This document shows, in pieces, positions 2,479-63,052 of a stretch of DNA of 64,000 nucleotides. The stretch lies in sequence record AP018399.1; one strand, 5' to 3'. The notes below the pieces were generated by a model. The model ran no database searches. It had not been told where the DNA came from and saw nothing but the letters and a program-made list of their open reading frames with translations. The position numbers and the translations under genes are program-made. Each line of letters opens with the position of its first letter. The stretch's first letter is position 1.

Positions 2479-2860
2479 CCAAATCGAAATAGATTTCGTC
2501 ATCATCGCCGCGATAGATGCGACCAGCATAGCGACCGGCGTTGCATCCTTCCTCATATTCCTTCCACCATGCCTCATCCGGATTGCTGGGCATGTCGCAT
2601 TCCCGCATGTCACCGGCAATCCATTGCAGGATGAGGGCATCCACCATTGCATCGGTGTAGTCTGCGATTTCTTCCGCCGTGTAGTCGGAAGAATTGATGA
2701 TGAAATGTTCCTTGTCCTGTCGGGCGATTTCGGGCAGCAGGTTGGTCGCATCGGCCACCGCCTGACACCACGTAATCTGACCAGCGCTCAGACCGAGTTC
2801 GGCTTGGCTGGCCGAGTAGGAGCGGGGATTGATGGCAGCGACCAGCTTCGTGATGTTCAT
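2471..2860 (-). CDS. hypothetical protein
   Basis: ORF with its own TTGCAT/TATAAT promoter. Confidence 0.7.
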   Translation of the reverse strand: MNITKLVAAINPRSYSASQAELGLSAGQITWCQAVADATNLLPEIARQDKEHFIINSSDYTAEEIADYTDAMVDALILQWIAGDMRECDMPSNPDEAWWKEYEEGCNAGRYAGRIYRGDDDEIYFDLEA

Positions 2861-2898
2861 GGCTTGATGCCCTTGTGTGGTGTGTTTATTATACACAC

Positions 2899-3186
2899 TT
2901 AGATGGCAGATGCAACATGCTTGCGCAGCAGTTCCGCGATTTCCACGGCCATTGCATCCGGCTCTTCGCTGTTCTCTTCGCGAAGGTCATTGATGTGGTC
3001 ATAGAAGCTCAGCAGAATGCAGACCATCGTGTGATGCACGTTGACGGTCGCGCCATAGCCATTATTGAAGCCCCGGTACAGGGTATAGATGATATCGCGG
3101 GAACGATTCGACCAGAACTTGGTGTGCGTATCCTCATAGATGCGCTCGGCCTGCTCATAGGTGAATTCGATGGTGTAGATGTTCAT
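2899..3186 (-). CDS. hypothetical protein
   Basis: ORF with AAGGGA SD and promoter. Confidence 0.7.
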   Translation of the reverse strand: MNIYTIEFTYEQAERIYEDTHTKFWSNRSRDIIYTLYRGFNNGYGATVNVHHTMVCILLSFYDHINDLREENSEEPDAMAVEIAELLRKHVASAI

Positions 3187-3244
3187 CGTATGGTTCCCTT
3201 GTATGTGGGTGTCATTATACACAAATAAATTAAGCCGTCAAGTG

Positions 3245-3288
3245 TTGACATTATAATTTAGTTGCTGTAAAATGGATGGCAGGCCGGG
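3245..3288 (+). repeat. dispersed promoter-GGATGGCAGGCCGGG element, copy 1
   Basis: TTGACA-17-TAAAAT-GGATGGCAGGCCGGG. Confidence 0.9.
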
Positions 3289-3337
3289 ACTACAGCGCGC
3301 GGACAAAAAGAAAGGGAGCCAATCGGCCCCCTTCCTG

Positions 3338-3574
3338 TTACACTGCCCCGATGTACTTGGGGGCGGGTTCCATGTTGTGGAATCCCAGCTTGATGATGGT
3401 ATGCTCTTTGTACTTGATGAAGTGGAAGATGAAGAACAGGCGGAAACAGATATCGCCTTCATCATCCACATTCCACTTGAAAAGCATGTGCGGAATGTGG
3501 TAGCGATTCCACGCCCACCAGTATTGCAGTTTGATGCGGGCCTTGTACCACAGCGCGCGAATCTTCCAGCGCAT
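3338..3574 (-). CDS. hypothetical aromatic-rich protein
   Basis: ORF coupled to the upstream stop and followed by a terminator. Confidence 0.55.
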   Translation of the reverse strand: MRWKIRALWYKARIKLQYWWAWNRYHIPHMLFKWNVDDEGDICFRLFFIFHFIKYKEHTIIKLGFHNMEPAPKYIGAV

Positions 3575-3575
3575 G

Positions 3576-4250
3576 TTAGACCCCCATCGCTTCGCGGACT
3601 TCGGCGGGCAGCAGGGCGAAGCGTTCGGCGTTGATTGCATTGTAATCGTAACCGTCTTCCTTCGTGTCCATCCAATGCAGCATCCACATGAAGGGAGTTT
3701 TCGGCCACTTCTTGACGAATTCGCCGGTTTCCTTCATCCGGGTCAGCTTGTACACGAACGCTTCGCGGATATCGTAGTCGCCGACGAACGTGTAATCGCC
3801 GCGTTCGCCTTCGCAGCCACCGGAACAGCCGGACGGGTAGACGTTGTTTTGGTCGTTCGCCTTCCATGCGAAATAGACCTTGCCCATGTTCAGCGACGTG
3901 GTGCGGTAGGTTTCCATCGTCAGCAGGGCCGACAGTTCCGGATTCCAGTAGATGCGCTTTTCCTCGTCGCTCGGCTCTTCCGTATCGTCCCACGGATTGC
4001 CCTTGAACGCGACGGTTGCCAGCAGTTGGAAGCCCTGAGCCTCCACGATGGCGACAGCCTCGGCGAAGGTGATGTTGTAGTGCGTATCACGGGCAGCGCT
4101 GAGAGCATTGCGCTTGAGTTCGTTGTGACGCATGGCGAGAGCGAGGCCCAGCAGGTTGCTTTCCTCGGTCCGACGCTCGCCGGTCAGGCGTTCGGCCACG
4201 TCGATGGGGTCGAAGTCGAGGATGGTTTCCAGCGTGCTATTCTGCGGCAT
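3576..4250 (-). CDS. hypothetical phage protein
   Basis: 224-aa ORF with its own promoter. Confidence 0.8.
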   Translation of the reverse strand: MPQNSTLETILDFDPIDVAERLTGERRTEESNLLGLALAMRHNELKRNALSAARDTHYNITFAEAVAIVEAQGFQLLATVAFKGNPWDDTEEPSDEEKRIYWNPELSALLTMETYRTTSLNMGKVYFAWKANDQNNVYPSGCSGGCEGERGDYTFVGDYDIREAFVYKLTRMKETGEFVKKWPKTPFMWMLHWMDTKEDGYDYNAINAERFALLPAEVREAMGV

Positions 4251-5347: not shown

Positions 5348-5647
5348 TCAGGAAACCGTCTTGAGGGATTCGCGCTTGTCGATGTATCCCTTTTCGACCA
5401 GCGTATCGAACAGGGCGCAAAGGCCGTTGTTGCGATTCTTGACGGTCATGCGACCGGGGATGTTCTGGCGAACCTGACGGTCTTGGAAGATGATGGTTTC
5501 GAAGCTGCGGACCGAACCGTCTTCACGACGCTCCACCTTGCCTTCCACGGCCATCGCGTAACCCGGACGGCCATCCGGCTTGTGGGTGTAGAGATTCCAG
5601 TGGTAGCCTTCCTGCGTGGACGGAATGTACTGGCTGTCGCTGCTCAT
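5348..5647 (-). CDS. hypothetical protein
   Basis: ORF with promoter and terminator. Confidence 0.7.
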   Translation of the reverse strand: MSSDSQYIPSTQEGYHWNLYTHKPDGRPGYAMAVEGKVERREDGSVRSFETIIFQDRQVRQNIPGRMTVKNRNNGLCALFDTLVEKGYIDKRESLKTVS

Positions 5648-28636: not shown

Positions 28637-29275
28637 ATGAACCTCATTCCTGCCACTGTCACCGTTCCGGACTTCATCCTCAACAACGACCTGTTCCTGC
28701 GTGCGGCGAACTTCGCCCACAAGCACCATGATGCGGTCGGACAGAAGCGGGAAGGCTCTGGCGAACCCTACATCGTCCATCCGCTGGAAGTGGCCGGTCT
28801 GGCTCACGCGATGGGCCATGAGTTCGACTATCCGAGCGAATGGATTGAAGTGGCTGTCGTCGCGGCGCTGCTGCACGACACCATCGAAGACACCAAATGC
28901 ACCTACAACGAAATCGAAGCTGAGTTCGGGGCTGTCGTTCGCGACACCGTGTTCTGGCTGACGGACGTGGTGGAGAAGGCCAAGGGCAATCGCCGGGTGC
29001 GCAAGGAACTGGAACGTGTGCGTCTCATGGCTGCACCGGGCCGGGTCAAGTTCATCAAGTGCTGCGATATCATCGCCAATGCCCGCTGCATCCTCAAGGA
29101 CAAGCCGGGTTCGGCTCAGTTGTTCCTCACCGAGAAGATGAGCGTGCTGGATACGTTCGTCCACTACAACCGGATGCACAAGGGCACCGATAACATCGGC
29201 AAGTTGGATAAACAAATGCTTGCCAAGTGCCGTGCGGTTCTGGTAGAATTCATGGACACTATCAGCAAGCCCTAA
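28637..29275 (+). CDS. HD-domain (p)ppGpp hydrolase-like protein (small alarmone hydrolase)
   Basis: H..GQKREGSGEPYIVHP ... ALLHDTIEDT, the RelA/SpoT HD signature. Confidence 0.8.
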   Translation: MNLIPATVTVPDFILNNDLFLRAANFAHKHHDAVGQKREGSGEPYIVHPLEVAGLAHAMGHEFDYPSEWIEVAVVAALLHDTIEDTKCTYNEIEAEFGAVVRDTVFWLTDVVEKAKGNRRVRKELERVRLMAAPGRVKFIKCCDIIANARCILKDKPGSAQLFLTEKMSVLDTFVHYNRMHKGTDNIGKLDKQMLAKCRAVLVEFMDTISKP

Positions 29276-30281: not shown

Positions 30282-30390
30282 GGGAATGTAGCTCAGAGGA
30301 CAGAGCGCAGGGCGAGGAAGGGACTGGTTTTCCACCAGTAAACCCATCCAATCTCAGAAGTCAGTGGTTCGAATCCATTCATTCCCACCA
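30282..30390 (+). ncRNA. tRNA-like RNA with extended anticodon arm (109 nt)
   Basis: Acceptor GGGAATG/CATTCCC-ACCA, normal D and T arms, ~33 extra nt. Confidence 0.75.
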
Positions 30391-34299: not shown

Positions 34300-35500
34300 T
34301 GGGTTATAATAAACCCATGACCTACACCGTCCAATACGCAGACAAGAGTCGGCTTCCGACTCTTGTCGCTGCCTACCAACTGGTTGACCAAGCTCTCAAG
34401 GGCTTGGCAATCACGAAGGATTGCGCGGTTACGCTCAATCGCTTCTACTACGACAATGAATTCTTCCTCTTCAACTTCTCCGTGACGTTGAAGGGGACCA
34501 AGCCCTGCATGTACCTGCTTTCCATCCCCAATGACAGTGCGATGGGCATGATGGGCTGGACTATCCGCAGCAACAAGTGGAATGGTCAGCGGGAGCCAAT
34601 CGACTCGCCTGCGTTGTCATTCGGCCACTTCATCCGCAAGACGGACCACGACAAGAACAAGAAGAAGAAATGAACATCAACGAATACAAGAAGCGCAAGT
34701 TCCGTGAACTCAAGGCCAAGAAGAAGGCATTCGGCTTCGAACTATCGGTGCATGACCCGGCTTCCATCATCGCTGCCGCCAAGGCAATCGAAATGGCCGA
34801 ATGGATGGACAAGGGCGTTCTGGTCGAATTCAAGACCGATTACAACGCGCGTGAACTGAAAATCTATACCGATAACCCGGCTTTGGCTGGTGAAATGCGT
34901 CTTCTGTGTTGACAAATCATTGCCAGTATGATTAAATACTGGTAATGACAAACGAAAAAGACATAGCTACAAGGGTAGCTGAAAAAGAAGCTGAGATTGA
35001 ACGTTACAAAGAAATCCTCCACCGGTACCTAACCGGACCCTCACGAACCACTCGCTGGTACAACAACGGCAAGGTTCATCTGGAAGAGCTAGAAGCAGAA
35101 CTAGCTGAACTCAAAAAAGAACTTGACTCTCCAAGTTAATCTGCTATAATTACCCAATCTTCCCAACAGGAACACTTCAATGCCTTGCAGTGATGGTGGT
35201 GTGGCGTATCCCCCGAGCAAAGAAGAACTGGCCGAGCGCGCTTTCATCAAGCGTGCCCCCGGTATGCTCTGCTCGGCCTGTCGTGCGCTGGAATCGTTCG
35301 GCTACGACTTCGACCTGAACCCGGAACTCGCCGACTGGTGGGCCAAGCACAAGGCCGAAGATGCCGAGCGTGAGCGCAAGGAACACGCCAAGCGACTGGA
35401 ACTGGAACAGGTGAACGAAATCATCAAGAAGCCGTTCAAGAACCTGACGGCCGAAGAAAAGCGTCTGCTCAAGAAGCACAACTACCTCTAAGGAACCAAC

Positions 35501-36040
35501 ATGAAATACATTCTCCTGATTCTCGCTCTGATGTTCTCGGCTCCGGTCTTCGCACAGCAGACCGAACAGCGCACTCCGAGCGAACAACTGAACGCTGAAA
35601 TCGCTCAGATGAGCGATGCACAGAAGGCCGAAGCTCTCAAGGCCATCCATGCCGGTCAGTCCGATACTGCGGCCAAGGCTCGCGAGTGGATTGATATCGG
35701 CAATGGCCTCGGTGCTGGTCTGGCCGCTACCGCTGAAAAGCTGGGCGTGGTTGCCAACGACTTCGCCAAGTCTCCGGTCGGCAAGCTGGCAATGGTTCTC
35801 ATCATCTGGAATTACATGGGTGATGACCTGTTGGGCGTCATCATCGGCTTCCCGATGCTGTTCCTCGGTGGCCTGATGTTCGTCTACCAGATGCGCAAGA
35901 CCTATGGCATCTACAACGAAAAGGGCAAGTTCATTCAGTACGACGTGGTTGCTCTGAATGACAGCCGTTGTGGCCCCGGTGTGTTCATGAGCATCGTGTT
36001 CGTCATCTACACCATTGTGTCGATTGTCGTCATCTGCTAA
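35501..36040 (+). CDS. exported/membrane protein
   Basis: Signal peptide and TM helices. Confidence 0.75.
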   Translation: MKYILLILALMFSAPVFAQQTEQRTPSEQLNAEIAQMSDAQKAEALKAIHAGQSDTAAKAREWIDIGNGLGAGLAATAEKLGVVANDFAKSPVGKLAMVLIIWNYMGDDLLGVIIGFPMLFLGGLMFVYQMRKTYGIYNEKGKFIQYDVVALNDSRCGPGVFMSIVFVIYTIVSIVVIC

Positions 36041-36046
36041 GATAAC

Positions 36047-36122
36047 GGCCCGTTAGCTCAGCGGTCAGAGCAAGAGCCTCTAAAACTCCGGGTCGTGGGT
36101 TCGAATCCCACACGGGCCACCA
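36047..36122 (+). tRNA. amber-reading tRNA (CUA), A73
   Basis: 76-nt cloverleaf, loop CT-CTA-AA, CCA. Confidence 0.85.
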
Positions 36123-36129
36123 ATCAAAT

Positions 36130-36205
36130 GCTTTCGTAGCTCAGCGGTCAGAGCAAGAGCCTCTAAAACTCCGGGTCGTGGGTTCGAATCCCACCGAAAG
36201 CGCCA
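36130..36205 (+). tRNA. amber-reading tRNA (CUA), G73
   Basis: Same D/AC/T arms as the previous tRNA but a different acceptor stem. Confidence 0.85.
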
Positions 36206-36245
36206 AGTTGTTGACAAACTCCCATCACTAAATTATACTTGTGCC

Positions 36246-36560
36246 ATGAACGAAATCATCCAGAAGATGTTCCCCACTGGCACTCTCAATGGCCGTGGTG
36301 GTACCGAAGTGAACGGTCTGACCAAGGGCACGGTTCCGGCTGGTACCATTCTCAAGAGTGGACAGGACAAGTTCGACAACAAGGGCCGTCGTGAATTCTA
36401 CGCGGTCGAACTGGATGGGCATGTCGCGTACCTGCGAGTGTGCGAAGCATATCCGGGTAGTGGCTATGACGAATTCGCGGTTATACATCGCGTCGTCAAA
36501 GCCGAAGAGACGGAAGAAGTGAATGAAATTCTCAACACCGTTTCTCGTATGACCAGCTAA
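36246..36560 (+). CDS. hypothetical protein
   Basis: ORF with promoter. Confidence 0.65.
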   Translation: MNEIIQKMFPTGTLNGRGGTEVNGLTKGTVPAGTILKSGQDKFDNKGRREFYAVELDGHVAYLRVCEAYPGSGYDEFAVIHRVVKAEETEEVNEILNTVSRMTS

Positions 36561-36630
36561 AAAGTAGTTGACAAGTTCGATTTTTGTAGTAAAGTATCAA
36601 TCTCGGTGACGGCATAGAGGCCACTCACTG

Positions 36631-36660
36631 GTTCTTTAACAACTTGAGCGGAAACAAGTT
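36631..36660 (+). promoter_or_regulatory. boxA (GTTCTTTAACAA) plus hairpin AACTTG-AGCGGAAA-CAAGTT
   Basis: Matches the rrn/nut boxA consensus, downstream of TTGACA at 36568. Confidence 0.65.
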
Positions 36661-36851
36661 CATAGACTGAACATGCCTCGGTAGGTCAGTATGGTGGCAA
36701 CACCATCTGGGGATGAGGACATGCTAGGAACCAATATGCTTTGGATACGCAGTGGTCGTTCACTAGCCACGACTACGGTATACGCTATCAGCACACAATA
36801 TGCATTGAATGTGCGGCGATTTGAAAGCTAGAGGCGTGTTCAATCTATGAA
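36659..36851 (+). ncRNA. unknown ~190-nt structured RNA
   Basis: 21-bp terminal helix and an internal GNRA hairpin ATGGTG-GCAA-CACCAT. Confidence 0.6.
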
Positions 36852-36855
36852 TTTT

Positions 36856-36980
36856 TGGTAGGTAAGCAAGTGGGCAACGTAAGACGGCAATGGTGTAGGT
36901 ATCCGTGAGGTATCAGAGTACGGTTGAGTCTCCCAGAAACCGTTTCAACTTCGTGAGTTCGAATCTCACCCTACCAGCCA
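36856..36980 (+). ncRNA. tRNA-like RNA (Tyr-like body) with large central insertion
   Basis: TGGTAGG/CCTACCA-GCCA; T arm GTGAG-TTCGAAT-CTCAC. Confidence 0.7.
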
Positions 36981-36987
36981 ATTCTAT

Positions 36988-37052
36988 GCACAGGTTACTT
37001 GGAAGCATCCGGTTGCGCACCGTGATGGGTGGTTCGATACCACTTCTGTGCC
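36988..37052 (+). ncRNA. D-arm-reduced tRNA-like RNA (loop TTGCGCA)
   Basis: GCACAGG/TCTGTGC and a T arm; no CCA. Confidence 0.5.
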
Positions 37053-37066
37053 GCGATTCGTATAGT

Positions 37067-37213
37067 ATTCTGATGGCGAAATAGGTAGACGCGGGGGTCT
37101 AGGCCAATATGGAGAAGGGAGCTAAACATTCCCTCTGCTGCTCATGGTCGGAAACTGCTGTGAAAGCGTTGCAGCAAAACGCTGACCGTGTGGGTTCGAC
37201 TCCCACTCAGAAA
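37067..37213 (+). ncRNA. tRNA-like RNA (Leu-like body) with extended anticodon arm
   Basis: Leu-type D loop GGCGAAATAGGTAGACGC, V arm and T arm; ~60 extra nt. Confidence 0.65.
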
Positions 37214-37224
37214 TTACTATATAA

Positions 37225-37620
37225 CAGTATGGTCGTAATCCCTTTAAAATGAAGGGCGTTCGGACGCGGGTTCGATTCCCGCCACGTCCACCACATGCAT
37301 CTTATAGCCAGAACTGAATCTGGTAAGAGGTAGTCAGCCACATTGAACCTTTCAGTAGAGCGCTGACCTAAGTCGCATGTAGTAACCCGCTTTAGGGTGC
37401 AAGTGATGGGCGTGCCAAGGTTTCGACGGGCGAAGATAGTGGAGAAGGCGACTAGCCAGAGTAGGCTCTAAAACTAAAACCTAAAGTAACTGCCAACGCA
37501 AATACTTTCGATTACGCACTAGCTGCCTAATCCCAAGCACATCCAGCACTTGGTCACCGAACGCTGGGCAATAGCAGTCCTTGGACTGTCTATTGTGAAA
37601 CATCTTCTGGTTCAGCCAGC
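37225..37620 (+). ncRNA. ssrA: circularly permuted (two-piece) tmRNA; tag ANANTFDYALAA
   Basis: Acceptor piece ending CACGTCCACCA (37293) precedes the 5' GGGCGTG (37408); G3.U70; tag 37492-37530; outer ends approximate. Confidence 0.85.
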
Positions 37621-37637
37621 CTAGGCAAAAGACGCAT

Positions 37638-37727
37638 GGCGGTATGGCACTCCGCATACAGAGGGTGTATTCACAATATGCAGTTCGTTATTGAGAGGAA
37701 ATGTAGGTTCGATTCCTACGGTCGCCG
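37638..37727 (+). ncRNA. degenerate tRNA-like element
   Basis: T arm GTAGG-TTCGATT-CCTAC and weak acceptor GGCGGT/GGTCGCC. Confidence 0.35.
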
Positions 37728-37857
37728 CAGACCCCACTATGCTGGTCTGTGAAAAACAGTCGATATGGGTTAATATGGAAAACGCCTCTCATCTTTCAAA
37801 TAGGAGTTGACAATGAGCATTGTTTTTGCTACTATGTCGGCTTCTGTAACAAGCTAC

Positions 37858-38051
37858 GCCCTTGAGTAAGACAGTCAGGGAGTAAGCTCTTAATGTGAGC
37901 ATGGTCGCCCCCACCTTTTGATAGGCTAGCCGGGGAGAGGTTCGAATCCTCTAAGCACCGTTAGGCTGAGACGAAAGGACTACGTTGCGAAGCATTGCAC
38001 GCCAATTCCGGAAACGGCTGGTAGTGTTAGCATCCGACTACAAGGGCACCA
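37858..38051 (+). ncRNA. 194-nt tRNA-like RNA with ~88-nt insert between T arm and acceptor 3' strand
   Basis: GCCCTTG/CAAGGGC-ACCA; internal AGAGG-TTCGAAT-CCTCT. Confidence 0.65.
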
Positions 38052-38104
38052 AATTAGGTGTTGACAAACGAAGAAAGTATGGTAATATGTACTTCTTCAC
38101 CGGT

Positions 38105-38192
38105 AACCACTGACGATTGGCCCACCGCAAAAGGGCCGAAACAGAGAGACACAAGCGAGTTTACCTCCTTCCTCGCCGTCTCCTGTCTGGTT
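38105..38192 (+). ncRNA. hammerhead ribozyme-like RNA (type I), predicted cleavage after GUC at 38187
   Basis: CUGACGA, stem II GGCCC/GGGCC, GAAA, stem III ACAG/CTGT, stem I AACCA/TGGTT; extra UU after A9. Confidence 0.7.
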
Positions 38193-38214
38193 TGACAACT
38201 TGAGTGCGGAAACA

Positions 38215-38995
38215 ATCTCAAGGTGGAATAGCGTACAGTGATGTGCGTAAAGTGTGGCCCGCTCAGGCTGCGCACCATGCAAATGGCTCCATCAAACAAG
38301 CACCGACTCCGGGGCACGCCAAAAGTGTGTCACGGCCCTTGTGAAGAACCACGAGGGAACTTGGAAAAGGTGCCCGACAAGCTAGTCTTGGGACAACTGA
38401 GACAGTTTCCACCCGCAAAGTGGATTAGGGATGCAACACGGATACCAAGCACTAGTCAAGGTGTAGAACATAAGCATGAGGCTGCAACCAAGTGCGATGT
38501 TCAGTGAAGTGGGACTGTTTAACAGGCAGAACCGCATATACAATCCGAGTAGCCGCAAGCGAAAGGATACAGGGGCGTGTTGTATTTGGTACTTCAAAAG
38601 GGTATCGAGCAACGGCAACACACGTCCTGAGCAACAAAACAACTTCATAGGTTAATGAAATTAATTAAACGCAAAGTTGTTGCCGGTGCATGATGAAAGT
38701 GACGTAATGCTTGACACGCAAGTGAATCAAGCCATTCCGAGGCTCGCAAGGCAGAGGGGTGTTGTGGGAAAGTCGCACGTTTGGGGTCGAACCCTTTACT
38801 GCTCGCAAGGCAGGCGGTAGACAGAACCATGAATAGTCATGCACGACAGTGGAAATGCCACCACTTTAATCTAGGCCGTCATGGTTGCTACTCACATGAG
38901 TGAGTGGATAACGGTAGAAACTTCGCTCGCAAGCGGAGTATAATGACCGGAAAGGTAACCAATCAATGCTGTAATCTCAGGCAGGCTTTTCCAAT
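38215..38995 (+). ncRNA. giant ornate ncRNA, GOLLD-like (~780 nt)
   Basis: No credible ORF, many GNRA hairpins, tRNA context, GGCGTGTTGTA..CAAAAGG and GTAATCTCAG motifs recalled from GOLLD. Confidence 0.6.
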
Positions 38996-39052
38996 AAATT
39001 CAAGACCTTGCAGCTTTAAGCGCAATCACACTAAATAGATTTACATTTCTAT

Positions 39053-39138
39053 GCGGGTGTGGCCGAGTGGTCGATGGCACTAGTCTTCCAAACTAGACTC
39101 AGAAATGGGCGCGAGTTCGAATCTCGCCACCCGCTCCA
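39053..39138 (+). tRNA. tRNA-Gly(UCC) with long variable arm
   Basis: Loop CTTCCAA, U73, V arm CTCAGAAATGGG. Confidence 0.85.
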
Positions 39139-39263
39139 AATTCAAAGAATTCAAGACAGATGTACACTGGACTGAATCGTCATTAGCGCCCAAGGGTGCA
39201 GAGAGTTCCGCTAGTATCTCGCTGCAACGACGTTAATGAATGTTCGACTAGCTCCAAATTTGA

Positions 39264-39342
39264 CGCGCGGTACAATCAATATCGGCAGATGGGCACCCTC
39301 ATAAGGTGTCGGTTGGGAGTTCAAGTCTCCCCTGCGCTACCA
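39264..39342 (+). tRNA. tRNA(CAU), initiator-like C1 mismatch
   Basis: C1.U72; lacks the three anticodon-stem G-C pairs. Confidence 0.75.
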
Positions 39343-39443
39343 AACCCGGATAGGGTAGCTCCCTATCCTTCGTAGGTGTGACCGGCTCTCATGAGGCTTG
39401 TCGGTTCTTGACTGAGCAACCTACAACCAATTCGTAGTACAAT

Positions 39444-39528
39444 GGGCGTGTGGCGGAATTGGCAGACGCACTAGATTTAGGTTCTAGCGCCGCAAGGCGT
39501 GTGGGTTCGACTCCCACCTAGCCCACCA
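39444..39528 (+). tRNA. tRNA-Leu(UAG)
   Basis: Class II cloverleaf. Confidence 0.95.
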
Positions 39529-39704
39529 AACGTCGGTCGGTACCTTAAGCAAGTACCGCCAAGTTATCAGTGATTTGCCTAGTTTAAGCTGATGGCTCGC
39601 CGTGAAACAGTCGGATATTAAAACGGGTAGGGTGTCGCCGATAGACTAGTGAATCAGCTTGCTAAGGGCTGGGAATCGAAACTGCTACTTAGCTTCCATT
39701 CTAT

Positions 39705-39779
39705 GGAGCATTCGTCTATCGGTTAGGACGCTAGACTTTCACTCTGGAAAGAGGGGTTCGACTCCCCTATGCTCTACCA
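39705..39779 (+). tRNA. tRNA-Glu(UUC)
   Basis: Cloverleaf with CCA. Confidence 0.95.
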
Positions 39780-39783
39780 ACAC

Positions 39784-39813
39784 AGAAGCCCGCCTAGTGC
39801 GGGCTTTTCTTTT
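39784..39813 (+). terminator. intrinsic terminator ending the RNA island
   Basis: AGAAGCCCGC-CTAGT-GCGGGCTTTT-CTTTT. Confidence 0.85.
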
Positions 39814-40540
39814 TGCTATATAATAATTGGAACATAGGATTTCAAATGGAATTATCCCCAATCCACCAATTATTGATTCTGGGAACGCTGACGCTCATCG
39901 CCGTAGTCTCGGTGGTTTCGCTCGCCTATCAGATGTACTTCCTGCCCAAGAAGCGCAAAGCCTTCCTCATTAAAGAAATGGGACATTGCTTGCTGACTCG
40001 TGAGCAAATTTACGGTGCGGAACTCATCAACCACTGCCGAACCATCCTGCATAATATCGACATACATTGCAGTATGAGAGAAGGATTCAAGATGGTCTAC
40101 ACATACGGCAAGTATGAGATAGGCGTCAACTGGTATCCTGTCAATGGATTGTTTGAGTTCACCTTCCCGGTCAAGTACGAAACGATTGCGAAAATTTACT
40201 ATCCGACTTGACAAACGAAGTTGATGGGTCTATAATTCTCATCATCAAGTCAGGACACACAATGACCACTTACAACGAAGAGTCGAGAGCGAAGATTTAC
40301 GAGCAGTATCCGCAGAAGCCCCGTGAGCAGAAGCGCATCGGTGGCCTCATCGAAAACTGGTCGCTGGTTCCGTTCAATGGCGATGACAAGAAGCTGGTCA
40401 TCGTGGGGTCGCTGAGTGGCGACAACTATTGGGACAAAGGCCCAATCCGTACTTCGCTCATCATGAGCATCAATGAAGATGAGACTGAGGCCGAAACCCT
40501 CAATACCATCTACAAGCTGGGCGTCAAGGCTTCGGCCTAA

Positions 40541-43626: not shown

Positions 43627-44110
43627 TCTGGTAAGATAACATCATCACATCGGGTAAGCCCTTCACTGACCAGTGAGTCCGAGGAAGGGAGAGAAAGCAG
43701 GCCGGGTTGTTGGGGGCGCTGCCGAAAAGAGGGAGAGACAGTGGCACGAATGAAGCAAATGCATCTGGATATCATCGAAAGCCAAGAGGCTGACGAGGAA
43801 GGTATCATCAATGCGGTGCCAACTCCGGTTCCGTCTCCCGCACGGGAGGTCGCAAATGCCGAAGTATCTCCTGATTGATTCCACTTCGGTTTTCATTCCG
43901 GGCGACGAGCGTTCACGCACGAATCCCGGTCACGGATACCCCGAGCGGACGGAAACGTACCCGGTGTTGAAGTGGTTCGATACCGAGCAGCAAGTGCTGG
44001 AATATCTGGAAACGTGGGGTCGTAACATCAAAGACCCGCAGATATGGGAACTCGCTGGTAAAGTCAAACTGGAAGTGAAGACTACCTTGTCACTTTCCAA
44101 GTAATATTCC

Positions 44111-45295: not shown

Positions 45296-45445
45296 GGGGT
45301 GTTAGGGAATTGGAAAACTCGCCGGAAGTAATCCGGTAGCTTGTGATAAGGTTGCAACCACCGAAATCGACTGCATTCTAGAACGTAGTCACTAGTAGGT
45401 ATCATGATAGCTTGACTTTGGTTCGAATCCAGAGACACCCCACCA
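45296..45445 (+). ncRNA. 150-nt tRNA-like RNA with ~80-nt variable-arm domain
   Basis: GGGGTGT/ACACCCC-ACCA, AC arm GCCGG-AAGTAAT-CCGGT, T arm. Confidence 0.75.
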
Positions 45446-56775: not shown

Positions 56776-58083
56776 TCACTCGGAAGCCGCAGATTCCAAG
56801 TCAACCACGTCCTTGTCCAGCAGCGCAGTTTCGTGCGCGAGGAACAGCGGAGACTTCGCCTTCGTGATGGTCGGCGACACCGCTTCGCACTCCACGATAC
56901 GCAGGCATACGCCTTCGTCCACGGTCTTTGCGTCGCTCAGCGGAACCGGCATATCGGTGAAAGCCGAATGGCCGCTCATCACGTCGTCGTAGTAGCGACG
57001 GTCCATCAGGGCTTCGATACGGCCAGAAGCTACCAAGTCCGCCTTACGACCACGGAAGAATTCCGGGGTGTGCATGATGCCGTTGTCCACACAGAAGCGC
57101 TTCACCGCATCCCACGACAGTTCCACATGACGGCCGTCGTTGGTGATGACCATGATACGATAGACGTACAGGTCAGCACGGCCCTGCGGCACGTTGTAGG
57201 TGTAACCCGACTGGATAGCCGCACCGTCGCCGGTCCAGCCAATCAGTTCCGCGTACAGGATGAAGTTCTGCGGCACGATGGCATCGTACTTCTTGCCTTC
57301 GGTAGACCAGATATCGTCCTTGTAGAAGTGGACCTGATTCGGGTTGTTCGCATCCTTGATGACGCGACGCGAACCGTACACATGGTCATACGCCGTGGTC
57401 TGCACCTTGACGCCGAAGAACTTGGCAACCTTTTCCTTCCACGTCGGCTGCACGTTCACCGGCACATGGCCGATACGGATAGACGTACCGTGGAGCTTCT
57501 GGGTCACGATGACTTCGGCATCATCCGGAATCGAATCCAACTGGCGGAACCAGTGGGAAGTCGCCAGATGTTCCGGCAGGAACTTGTTGTCGATACGCTT
57601 GAACTTCTCTTCCTTGAAGGAAGTCTTCTGCACACCGGCCTTGCGAGCCACTTCGTACTTGCGGCAGATTTCGATGCCCGCGATTTCATCGAAGGTATCG
57701 CCTTCCTTGAGCTTCGACACGTCGATGCCCGTGAAGGCCAGCGAATCCACCGGCATCACCAGCGCATCCGAACGATGACCACGGAACTTGATTGCACGCA
57801 CGCGACGGTTCGCTTCGATGTAACCCTTCTTTTCCGGGTCAGCATTCAGCGTGGTATCGCGGTACAGGTTGTTCGCCTTGGTGTATTCGTCGGACAACTG
57901 CGTCTCTGCCGTGAACACCAGCACGAGGTCGCCGACCTTCGTATCCTTGCCCACGATGGCCTGATAGCCGAACAGCGGAGCGCCAACCACGTTATCGCAG
58001 TTCGGCAGCACGTTGATGTGGCGAATCGTCGTGACCACAGCCACGTAGTTCGCGTTCTTCGGTTCCTTGAAAGTCAGAGACAT
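56776..58083 (-). CDS. ATP-dependent RNA ligase with N-terminal OB-like domain (DRB0094-like)
   Basis: Motif I TQKLHGT, motif IV DEGVC and motif V KAKS. Confidence 0.8.
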   Translation of the reverse strand: MSLTFKEPKNANYVAVVTTIRHINVLPNCDNVVGAPLFGYQAIVGKDTKVGDLVLVFTAETQLSDEYTKANNLYRDTTLNADPEKKGYIEANRRVRAIKFRGHRSDALVMPVDSLAFTGIDVSKLKEGDTFDEIAGIEICRKYEVARKAGVQKTSFKEEKFKRIDNKFLPEHLATSHWFRQLDSIPDDAEVIVTQKLHGTSIRIGHVPVNVQPTWKEKVAKFFGVKVQTTAYDHVYGSRRVIKDANNPNQVHFYKDDIWSTEGKKYDAIVPQNFILYAELIGWTGDGAAIQSGYTYNVPQGRADLYVYRIMVITNDGRHVELSWDAVKRFCVDNGIMHTPEFFRGRKADLVASGRIEALMDRRYYDDVMSGHSAFTDMPVPLSDAKTVDEGVCLRIVECEAVSPTITKAKSPLFLAHETALLDKDVVDLESAASE

Positions 58084-58196
58084 TGTTGTCGCCTTGTTGA
58101 TTGAATGTAGGAGTAAACTATAAACCAAAAAAGAAGCCGTGTCAACACTTGACACGGCCTCTTCATCAATGTTGTAACTAGTGTTTTATTTTTGTA

Positions 58197-62302: not shown

Positions 62303-63052
62303 TTAAACCAACGCAACTTCGGCCTCCGGCTCTTCTTGTTTTTCTATGTGCAAGCCCACGTACTCACGCATTTGCGAGAAGACAGGGATGTGTACATCAA
62401 CCTGCTTCGAAATGCTATTGTAGCACAGACCACGCTTTTTGTGAATCGCAATGTCGTTCCAGTTCACCGGAACATCCATCTGCATCAGCAAGTCCTGAAC
62501 CTGCTGATTGTTCAGGCCATGACACTTCTTATGGCCTAGGTAGTGCGTAGCCACAGAGCGGATACTGTTACGCACAGCATCGTTCTGTCGCCAAATGAAA
62601 TAATTTACAATCTCATCCTTCGGCAGCGAGAAGACACGCGAATCGAAGAATGCCAGCGGCTTGTCTTCGAAGGCATCAGCAGCCAGCTTGTTGAACATGC
62701 CAGTCGCCAGAGACGCGGACACGCTCACCATCTTCTGGACATTGCCATCGAACCATGCATCGGTCGTCAGGTTGTCGTAGTCACGTAGCAGGATGGAGAT
62801 TTCATCCGACTGGCAGTAAGCGAAAACTGCACCTTGGATATTCTCACATAGAAACTTCATGGTGTTCGCCATGATAGCGATGAACGTATCATCGTGGGGA
62901 CGGTCAAGTCCCTTCGTCCATGTGTGGAATGCCTTACCGTCCAGACGGATGATTGCGGGCGTGCGTCGCATCAACTTGATACGATTCACGTCCTCATACT
63001 TCTTCATGCGGTCGCCGAGACTATCGCCGCCCTTGGGTGCAGATTTCGCCAT
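62303..63052 (-). CDS. tRNA-His guanylyltransferase (Thg1)-like protein
   Basis: RMKKYE, IRLDGKAFHTWT, QSDEISI, FDSRVF, YFIWRQNDA. Confidence 0.9.
   Translation of the reverse strand: MAKSAPKGGDSLGDRMKKYEDVNRIKLMRRTPAIIRLDGKAFHTWTKGLDRPHDDTFIAIMANTMKFLCENIQGAVFAYCQSDEISILLRDYDNLTTDAWFDGNVQKMVSVSASLATGMFNKLAADAFEDKPLAFFDSRVFSLPKDEIVNYFIWRQNDAVRNSIRSVATHYLGHKKCHGLNNQQVQDLLMQMDVPVNWNDIAIHKKRGLCYNSISKQVDVHIPVFSQMREYVGLHIEKQEEPEAEVALV

Follow-up and report, generated by a model that had tools for sequence, protein, structure and literature searches.

The first 64,000 nucleotides of record AP018399.1 (below, the window) contain, between 36,560 and 39,813, a 3.2-kb island with no apparent protein gene, which raises the question of what such a segment encodes and how it might be transcribed over its whole length. 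Since megablast returned 100% identity between 36000-40500 and AP018399.1 at identical coordinates, the window corresponds to bases 1-64000 of Xanthomonas phage XacN1, a jumbo phage of 384,670 bp. The phage tRNA genes are contained in a 66-kb direct terminal repeat, inside which the window lies (PMC5852040), and the island is a segment of this tRNA region that is free of coding sequences (CDS). GenBank annotates three tRNAs only in the island range and leaves 36561-39052 (about 2.5 kb) blank; the paper that described XacN1 makes no mention of a transfer-messenger RNA (tmRNA), of the RNA family GOLLD or of promoters (PMC5852040).

Our analysis points to the island as being probably a conserved polycistronic cluster of RNA genes, protected from Rho, transcribed from host-type promoters into one terminator and processed at tRNA-like structures. 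Promoter P1 and a leader are followed by the tRNA-like elements TL-A, TL-B and TL-C and by a two-piece tmRNA gene, and promoter P3 is followed by GOLLD, four tRNA genes or candidates and the sole terminator. The features identified, all on the plus strand, are the following:

36568-36595, +, promoter P1 (sequence scan): -35 box TTGACA, 16-nt spacer, -10 box TAAAGT
36604-36662, +, nut-like leader: hairpin 1 (36604-36630), boxA (36631-36641), hairpin 2 (36645-36662)
36663-36855, +, predicted transcribed spacer, poorly conserved among relatives
36856-36980, +, TL-A, 125 nt: 7-bp acceptor stem, T-arm, branched core and encoded 3' NCCA
36988-37052, +, TL-B, 65 nt: acceptor stem and T-arm, no CCA
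37068-37215, +, TL-C, derived from a tRNA-Leu: long variable arm, no CCA
37231-37621, +, permuted two-piece tmRNA gene (ARAGORN, Rfam)
37231-37292, +, tmRNA acceptor piece, ending in CCA
37293-37408, +, tmRNA intervening segment, about 115 nt
37409-37621, +, tmRNA coding piece, with the tag frame at 37492-37530
37638-37728, +, TL-D, weakly tRNA-like (tRNA-Sec model, 16.7 bits, E 1.5), in XacN1 only
37807-37835, +, promoter-like site P2: perfect TTGACA, specific to XacN1
37858-38047, +, TL-E, a structured element of about 190 nt that immediately precedes P3 and includes an internal hairpin resembling a T-arm
38061-38088, +, promoter P3, the GOLLD promoter (sequence scan): perfect TTGACA
38096-38983, +, GOLLD RNA, 5' end predicted from P3: 5' domain at about 38096-38569, 3' domain at 38570-38983
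39053-39138, +, tRNA(UCC), 86 nt, 63.8 bits (ARAGORN, Rfam)
39265-39341, +, marginal tRNA with anticodon CAT (Rfam, 31.3 bits, threshold 29)
39444-39528, +, tRNA-Leu(UAG) (ARAGORN, Rfam)
39705-39779, +, tRNA-Glu(UUC) (ARAGORN, Rfam)
39784-39818, +, intrinsic terminator closing the island: 10-bp stem and T-run, kept in the metagenomic relatives L148 and L147

Relatives of the locus were collected by phage database searches, which gave Xoo-sp13, RAS14, CM1, BUDD and X1, and by a leader-motif scan of metagenomes, which gave the sequences L147, L148 and L152; scans of IMG/VR with two leader patterns, TL-C, TL-E and a motif of the GOLLD 5' domain returned chance matches or none, and no relatives. 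The order in L148 is leader, TL-B, TL-C, tmRNA, a tRNA, TL-E, P3 and GOLLD (232 bits), with Gly, Met, Leu and Glu tRNAs, the terminator and a homologue of ORF089 after it. L147 has the leader, TL-A, TL-B, tmRNA, TL-E and P3, and other sequence replaces GOLLD. Xoo-sp13 is syntenic: P1, the leader, most of the gene order and the tmRNA are present, GOLLD is not. In the Stenotrophomonas phages RAS14 and CM1, GOLLD is present together with its 5' domain, and no tmRNA occurs in the 12.9-kb locus examined; in the Xanthomonas phages BUDD and X1, GOLLD lies within a CDS-free array, which in BUDD amounts to 33 tRNAs in a 10-kb locus (ARAGORN). An earlier note on this DNA had proposed a coordinated RNA-only module whose synteny could be checked in relatives: the island does hold RNA genes only, in an organized arrangement, and both L148 and L147 retain the gene order together with P1, P3 and the terminator.

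The gammaproteobacterial boxA consensus is GYTCTTTAANA (PMC5725501), and a single perfect match to it occurs in the 64-kb window, on the plus strand at 36631-36641. This boxA starts 36 nt past the P1 -10 box, which would place it about 30 nt from the predicted 5' end of the RNA. The consensus fold of five phages leaves it unpaired between two predicted hairpins, so that the predicted transcript would present a hairpin, a single-stranded boxA and a further element, in this order. When the window and the related loci are taken together (about 124.5 kb), six perfect matches are found against about 0.48 expected; each of the six occurs in sense orientation where an RNA-gene array begins, with a hairpin immediately before it. 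They fall in three lineages, namely, the XacN1 group, RAS14 and BUDD/X1, and the arrangement of hairpin and boxA is present in RAS14, BUDD and X1 as well; the hairpin stem varies between lineages yet still pairs, with a similar loop. The boxA of Xoo-sp13 has one mismatch to the consensus. Downstream, the spacer at 36663-36855 is mostly without a blastn match to L148, L147 or RAS14, and it has no Rfam match.

The plural "boxA-like leaders" of the earlier note holds for this leader only. The second candidate, at 38191, shares 14 bases with the boxA at 36631, but it agrees by eye with 7 of the 11 consensus positions, is base-paired in two helices of the GOLLD 5' domain, and has its adjacent hairpin replaced in L148; we therefore rejected it. 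No further consensus match occurs in the island, so a second boxA like that of the spacer between 16S and 23S is lacking, and no rRNA family of Rfam matches the window. It follows that the likeness to an rRNA operon, also put forward in the earlier note, applies to the leader and does not extend to rRNA genes or to a spacer boxA.

At positions 2826-3859 of the RAS14 locus (L003), we could notice that the same combination of promoter, hairpin and boxA stands before about 1 kb of CDS-free DNA with a TL-B-like element and no detectable tmRNA, which indicates that the leader module drives different RNA cargo in different phages.

As for the promoters, P1 is conserved in L148, L147, L152, Xoo-sp13 and RAS14, and P3 in L148, L147 and RAS14; P2 is absent from L148 and L147, both close relatives examined. 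The promoter scan recovered the three sigma-70-like promoters that had been read from the sequence, with a perfect TTGACA at 36568, 37807 and 38061. They belong to a phage-wide family with the motif GTTGACAA, present in 26 copies in the window against 2.9 expected, whose strand follows the local gene direction in nearly all copies. Moreover, the closing terminator, which had been described as single and which the scan placed at 39784-39808, is the only plus-strand terminator-like site in 35500-40500 and is conserved in the two metagenomic relatives. On a larger scale, nearly all the GTTGACAA copies up to about 19 kb lie on the minus strand and all those at about 25 to 52 kb on the plus strand, a split suggestive of early transcription units that diverge within the terminal repeat.

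The tRNA-like elements TL-A, TL-B, TL-C and the tmRNA gene are separated by gaps of 7 to 15 nt, like the genes of a tRNA array. TL-A, TL-B and TL-C each have an acceptor stem of 7 bp that stacks on a T-arm containing a T-loop motif, and T-loop motifs outside the called tRNAs occur at 37031, 37193, 37706 and 37939. The features of TL-A, including NCCA, are kept in XacN1, L147 and Xoo-sp13; 12 of its 30 pairs show compensatory changes, a value that none of 500 shuffles reaches and that slid controls (1 to 3) do not approach. TL-B is conserved in XacN1, L148, L147 and RAS14, and compensatory changes are present in it as in TL-A and TL-C. The D-arm and T-arm of TL-C align with phage tRNA-Leu genes; its acceptor stem differs from that of tRNA-Leu, and an irregular extended arm of about 70 nt replaces the anticodon arm. 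Compensatory changes affect 8 of the 41 pairs of TL-C (0/500 shuffles reach this count). TL-E is conserved in L148, L147 and RAS14 with little covariation (5/44 pairs compensatory), and at the position of TL-D, L148 has a scoring tRNA (41.5 bits) and L147 nothing.

No match to the tRNA model RF00005 was obtained at E<10 in 36600-37230 and 37600-38100, and TL-A to TL-E stay below the 29 bits required of that model. ARAGORN calls the elements only with relaxed thresholds, as for TL-B, or with invented introns. Other models matched far below threshold (sX4 at 18 bits, tRNA-Sec at 17 bits and YrlA at 27.5 bits, the last over two suppressor tRNAs). The elements as ordinary or intron-bearing tRNAs, as tmRNA or as Y-RNA-like RNAs were thus rejected, because no such model matches. 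Further T-loop motifs outside the called tRNAs lie at 43974-43984 and 45420-45430, one inside the annotated "predicted ORF" 098 and one upstream of ORF101; more tRNA-like elements may be hidden under the small predicted open reading frames (ORFs) of the tRNA region.

The tmRNA that the earlier note had placed in the island is confirmed, in permuted form. ARAGORN calls it at 37201/37231-37621, with the tag ANANTFDYALAA followed by a stop, and Rfam scores exceed the thresholds of both RF04321 (123.2 bits, threshold 47) and RF01850 (107.8 bits, threshold 84). The acceptor piece comes first and pairs over 7 bp with the 5' end of the coding piece downstream. The tag frame has a hydrophobic C terminus and a stop, and the frame is kept, according to ARAGORN, in L147 (ANAETFDYALAA) and L148 (ANNDTFDYAMAA); orthologues of the gene are present in L147, L148 and Xoo-sp13. 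Trans-translation with this tmRNA would require the SmpB of the host. Transcripts of permuted tmRNA genes are cut into two pieces by tRNA-processing enzymes (PMC11915505). Two-piece tmRNA in phages is already known: 18,146 genomes yielded 53 unique forms, mostly from aquatic or marine phages (PMC9004378).

About ten structured RNAs other than tRNAs had been proposed for the island. We found instead one GOLLD RNA of about 890 nt, five tRNA-like elements and the leader hairpins: the GOLLD segment (38096-38983), which the earlier list had missed, is one known RNA (RF02032, 227 bits). Its 3' domain covers positions 1-416 of the 416 of the model (227.3 bits, threshold 150, E 4e-63), and, counted from the P3 start at about 38096, the whole RNA is about 890 nt long and ends at 38983. 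In the 5' domain, aligned with L148 and RAS14, 36 of 126 predicted pairs show compensatory changes. According to the family description, many members exceed 800 nt, with conservation in the 3' region and variation in the 5' region, and for one marine member a 14-mer RNA cage has been seen by cryo-electron microscopy. Members of the family belong to phages or prophages and often have tRNA genes next to them; the XacN1 RNA, too, is phage-encoded and stands beside tRNA genes. Its 3' domain (38572-38983, together with the copy in the other repeat) is listed in the supplementary alignment of Kretsch et al. 2025, which also lists CM1, BUDD and X1; the XacN1 GOLLD is therefore already catalogued and of a known kind.

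At the corresponding site of L147 (3179-3800), P3 and the first 30 or so transcribed bases are kept and about 540 nt of unrelated DNA, containing a weak tRNA of 33.6 bits, replaces GOLLD, a natural GOLLD-less counterpart. In the RAS14 locus (L003, 4828-5542), an annotated HNH homing endonuclease gene lies between two tRNA-Gly(UCC) genes just upstream of GOLLD.

Of the four tRNAs expected at the end of the island, three are solid (Gly UCC, Leu UAG and Glu UUC). The fourth, which Rfam calls at 39265-39337, is marginal, at 31.3 bits against a threshold of 29; ARAGORN calls it at relaxed thresholds only, and its L148 orthologue, also with anticodon CAT, scores 43.7 bits. The tRNA(UCC) at 39053 has a D-arm and a long variable arm that resemble the tRNA-Ser genes of XacN1, and an acceptor stem and discriminator that match the 74-nt tRNA-Gly of L147; relatives have at this position an ordinary tRNA-Gly of 74 to 75 nt. 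A role as a serine-charged recoding tRNA was considered and is unlikely, because of the match of acceptor stem and discriminator to the L147 tRNA-Gly.

Between tRNA(UCC) and tRNA(CAT), the 52-nt spacer at 39184-39235 is 86.5% identical in Xoo-sp13 and has matches in L148 and L147. The 175-nt spacer from tRNA-Leu to tRNA-Glu (39529-39704) is specific to XacN1, the two genes being about 10 to 15 nt apart in L147 and L148; a T-loop-like motif in reversed orientation occurs in this spacer, at 39672-39682. Two tandem tRNAs that closely precede the island (36047-36122 and 36130-36205) have the amber-reading anticodon CUA and carry the ARAGORN label "Pyl"; they had been noted in the XacN1 paper (PMC5852040), and such CUA tRNAs recur in L152, Xoo-sp13, RAS14 and, as two copies, L147. 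The RAS14 locus (L003) also has, at 5551-5625, a tRNA with the anticodon UUA, and in the window a 106-nt tRNA at 30282-30387 is called by Rfam alone.

Of the proteins elsewhere in the window that had been invoked in support of the module, three correspond to the following genes:

28637-29275, HD_4 hydrolase
56776-58155, -, RNA ligase
62303-63052, -, Thg1

The RNA ligase, Thg1 and HD hydrolase are real, but they lie 7 to 25 kb away and nothing ties them to the island.

On this basis, it is possible to hypothesize how the cluster would work. The host RNA polymerase would start at P1 and acquire NusB/NusE and other Nus factors through boxA, as on rRNA operons; loaded in this way, it could escape Rho-dependent termination over an untranslated stretch of more than 3 kb, and the Nus factors may also help the large RNAs to fold during synthesis. 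Host RNase P, RNase Z or RNase E would then cut the precursor at the tRNAs and tRNA-like elements, TL-A to TL-E presumably marking cleavage sites, and so set free GOLLD, the tRNAs and both pieces of the tmRNA. Translation through the long infection cycle (the growth cycle of XacN1 takes 240 min [PMC5852040]) would be aided by the tmRNA and the tRNAs, and GOLLD presumably forms the multimeric RNA cage described for its family.

Several points weigh against this reading. The transcript ends, the read-through from P1 past P2 and P3, and the processing sites are all predictions. By chance, about 0.24 matches to the 11-nt boxA would be expected per window, which makes a single match weak evidence on its own, so that the case rests on its position and recurrence; several of the recurrences are orthologous and hence not independent. 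GOLLD has its own promoter, without a consensus boxA, and the structure tests on the tRNA-like elements and GOLLD rest on only three to four related sequences. Furthermore, a composite pattern of hairpin loop and boxA, searched in the genomes of 185,579 species, gave one chance match, in an AT-rich archaeal contig; a host-derived leader is thus not supported, and as far as sequence comparison goes, the leader is not a copy, at least not a recent one, of a host leader.

It could also be that the island encodes small proteins overlooked by annotation, as 29 ORFs of 40 to 89 amino acids (at least 40 being the cutoff) are present across the two strands of 36561-39812. However, none of the 29 stays open in the homologous DNA of L148, L147 or Xoo-sp13, where each shows frameshifting indels and/or in-frame stops or is unconserved; the ten longest (58 to 89 amino acids) have no Pfam match at E<=0.01, and the longest fall within GOLLD, the helices of which covary. 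GenBank annotates no CDS in 36561-39845 either. With no Pfam matches among the ten longest and no conserved ORF, small proteins were rejected and have next to no likelihood, in agreement with the earlier statement that the island holds no credible protein gene. Harder to dismiss is the view that the tRNA-like elements are decaying, functionless duplicates left over from the turnover of the tRNA array, with a boxA that is fortuitous or a relic. TL-C is visibly derived from a tRNA-Leu, TL-D and P2 occur in XacN1 only, the CCA encoded in the scoring tRNAs of XacN1 is missing from TL-B to TL-E, and modules come and go, GOLLD being missing in L147 and Xoo-sp13 and TL-C in L147; some of the conservation is recent ancestry, since the close relatives are 77 to 97% identical. 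Yet the helices of TL-A (12/30) and TL-C (8/41) are kept by compensation, to an extent that 0/500 shuffles and slid controls (0 to 3) do not reproduce, TL-B and TL-E persist in the distant RAS14 where the flanking spacers are unalignable, the NCCA of TL-A is retained in three phages, and boxA with its preceding hairpin recurs in three lineages with stems that differ yet pair. We regard decay as rather unlikely for the island.

An anti-defence function would make the tRNA-like RNAs, and perhaps GOLLD, decoys or sponges for tRNA-targeting nucleases or RNA-binding defence proteins, with the tmRNA clearing stalled ribosomes. A decoy would indeed resemble nondecoding mimics with the shape of an acceptor stem and T-arm, the window contains an RNA ligase and Thg1, and tRNA repair genes of the PNKP/Hen1 type are present elsewhere in the XacN1 genome (PMC5852040). 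However, these repair genes do not adjoin the island, the anticodon arms, which are the usual targets of the nucleases, are lost or remodelled in the tRNA-like elements, and no evidence in the analysis bears on defence, so that we judge this function very unlikely. Quite unlikely, in our estimation, is also a bolder version of the cluster hypothesis, namely, that jumbo phages of the Xanthomonadaceae borrow the host rRNA antitermination and RNA-chaperone machinery through boxA for long noncoding RNA precursors, and that TL-A, with its CCA end, and TL-C, with its tRNA-Leu shape and a rod for the anticodon arm, are working tRNA mimics, chargeable or protein-binding, that would act on translation, ribosome rescue or host factors directed at tRNAs.

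For the preferred reading of a Rho-protected, processed RNA-gene cluster, the consensus boxA that heads RNA-gene arrays in three lineages suggests that Nus-factor antitermination may also be used for phage stable-RNA clusters; so far, such antitermination has been associated with lambdoid phages, rRNA and a small number of host genes. The search for literature combining boxA, antitermination, tRNA genes and bacteriophage found no paper, and neither the leader that places a boxA before phage RNA-gene arrays nor the group of conserved noncanonical tRNA-like RNAs appears to have been described in the searchable literature; this putative novelty is drawn from few sequences. The tRNA-like elements represent added candidates for the short list of nondecoding tRNA mimics. 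Moreover, GOLLD, among the largest bacterial and phage RNAs that are so far without a function, is placed here in a defined and conserved transcription context, with its own promoter, a conserved upstream RNA and a terminator shared with tRNAs, and the close relatives without GOLLD at the same site offer a natural comparison for expression studies.

The comparison with known systems starts from the Escherichia coli rrn leader, in which the order is boxB-boxA-boxC, with a boxB-like hairpin first, the opposite of lambda nut (PMC6614801), and which works with NusB/E, NusA, NusG, SuhB and S4. The P1 leader shares with it a perfect boxA, predicted to be single-stranded, with a hairpin before it and a conserved element after it, and it likewise heads a long untranslated RNA unit. 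Different from the rrn leader, the XacN1 unit has neither rRNA downstream nor a second boxA in a spacer, its flanking sequences copy none of the 185,579 species' genomes, and Nus-factor binding is predicted. With respect to the CDS-less tmRNA-like RNA of mycobacteriophage DS6A (PMC11915505), TL-A is also a small phage RNA with an acceptor stem, a T-arm and CCA and is likewise without a decoding or tag function; the likeness is one of principle and architectural only, as no sequence match was obtained and TL-A matches no tmRNA-family model at E<10.

The XacN1 tmRNA shares with the two-piece tmRNAs of the betaproteobacteria the acceptor-first order, the 7-bp pairing, the T-arm and CCA, and its tag frame likewise ends in ALAA and a stop. 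It differs in being phage-borne, in lacking a strong promoter of its own (the only site, a 9/12 match, is inside the gene) and in standing 15 nt after a tRNA-like gene, in a longer boxA-led unit. The GOLLD copy resembles its family in the full-length 3' domain, the large structured 5' domain and the neighboring tRNA genes, and in no family-defining feature does it differ. It belongs to a small subgroup of Xanthomonas and Stenotrophomonas jumbo phages and is preceded by TL-E and its own conserved promoter, with a short linker without tRNA. Finally, phage tRNA arrays with GOLLD, as in BUDD, X1 and the Mycobacterium arrays of the literature, are alike in the CDS-free run of tRNAs in which GOLLD is embedded, and those of BUDD and X1 too begin with a hairpin and boxA. 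Different from these, the XacN1 island has few scoring tRNAs and carries instead a tmRNA and five elements that fall outside the tRNA model.

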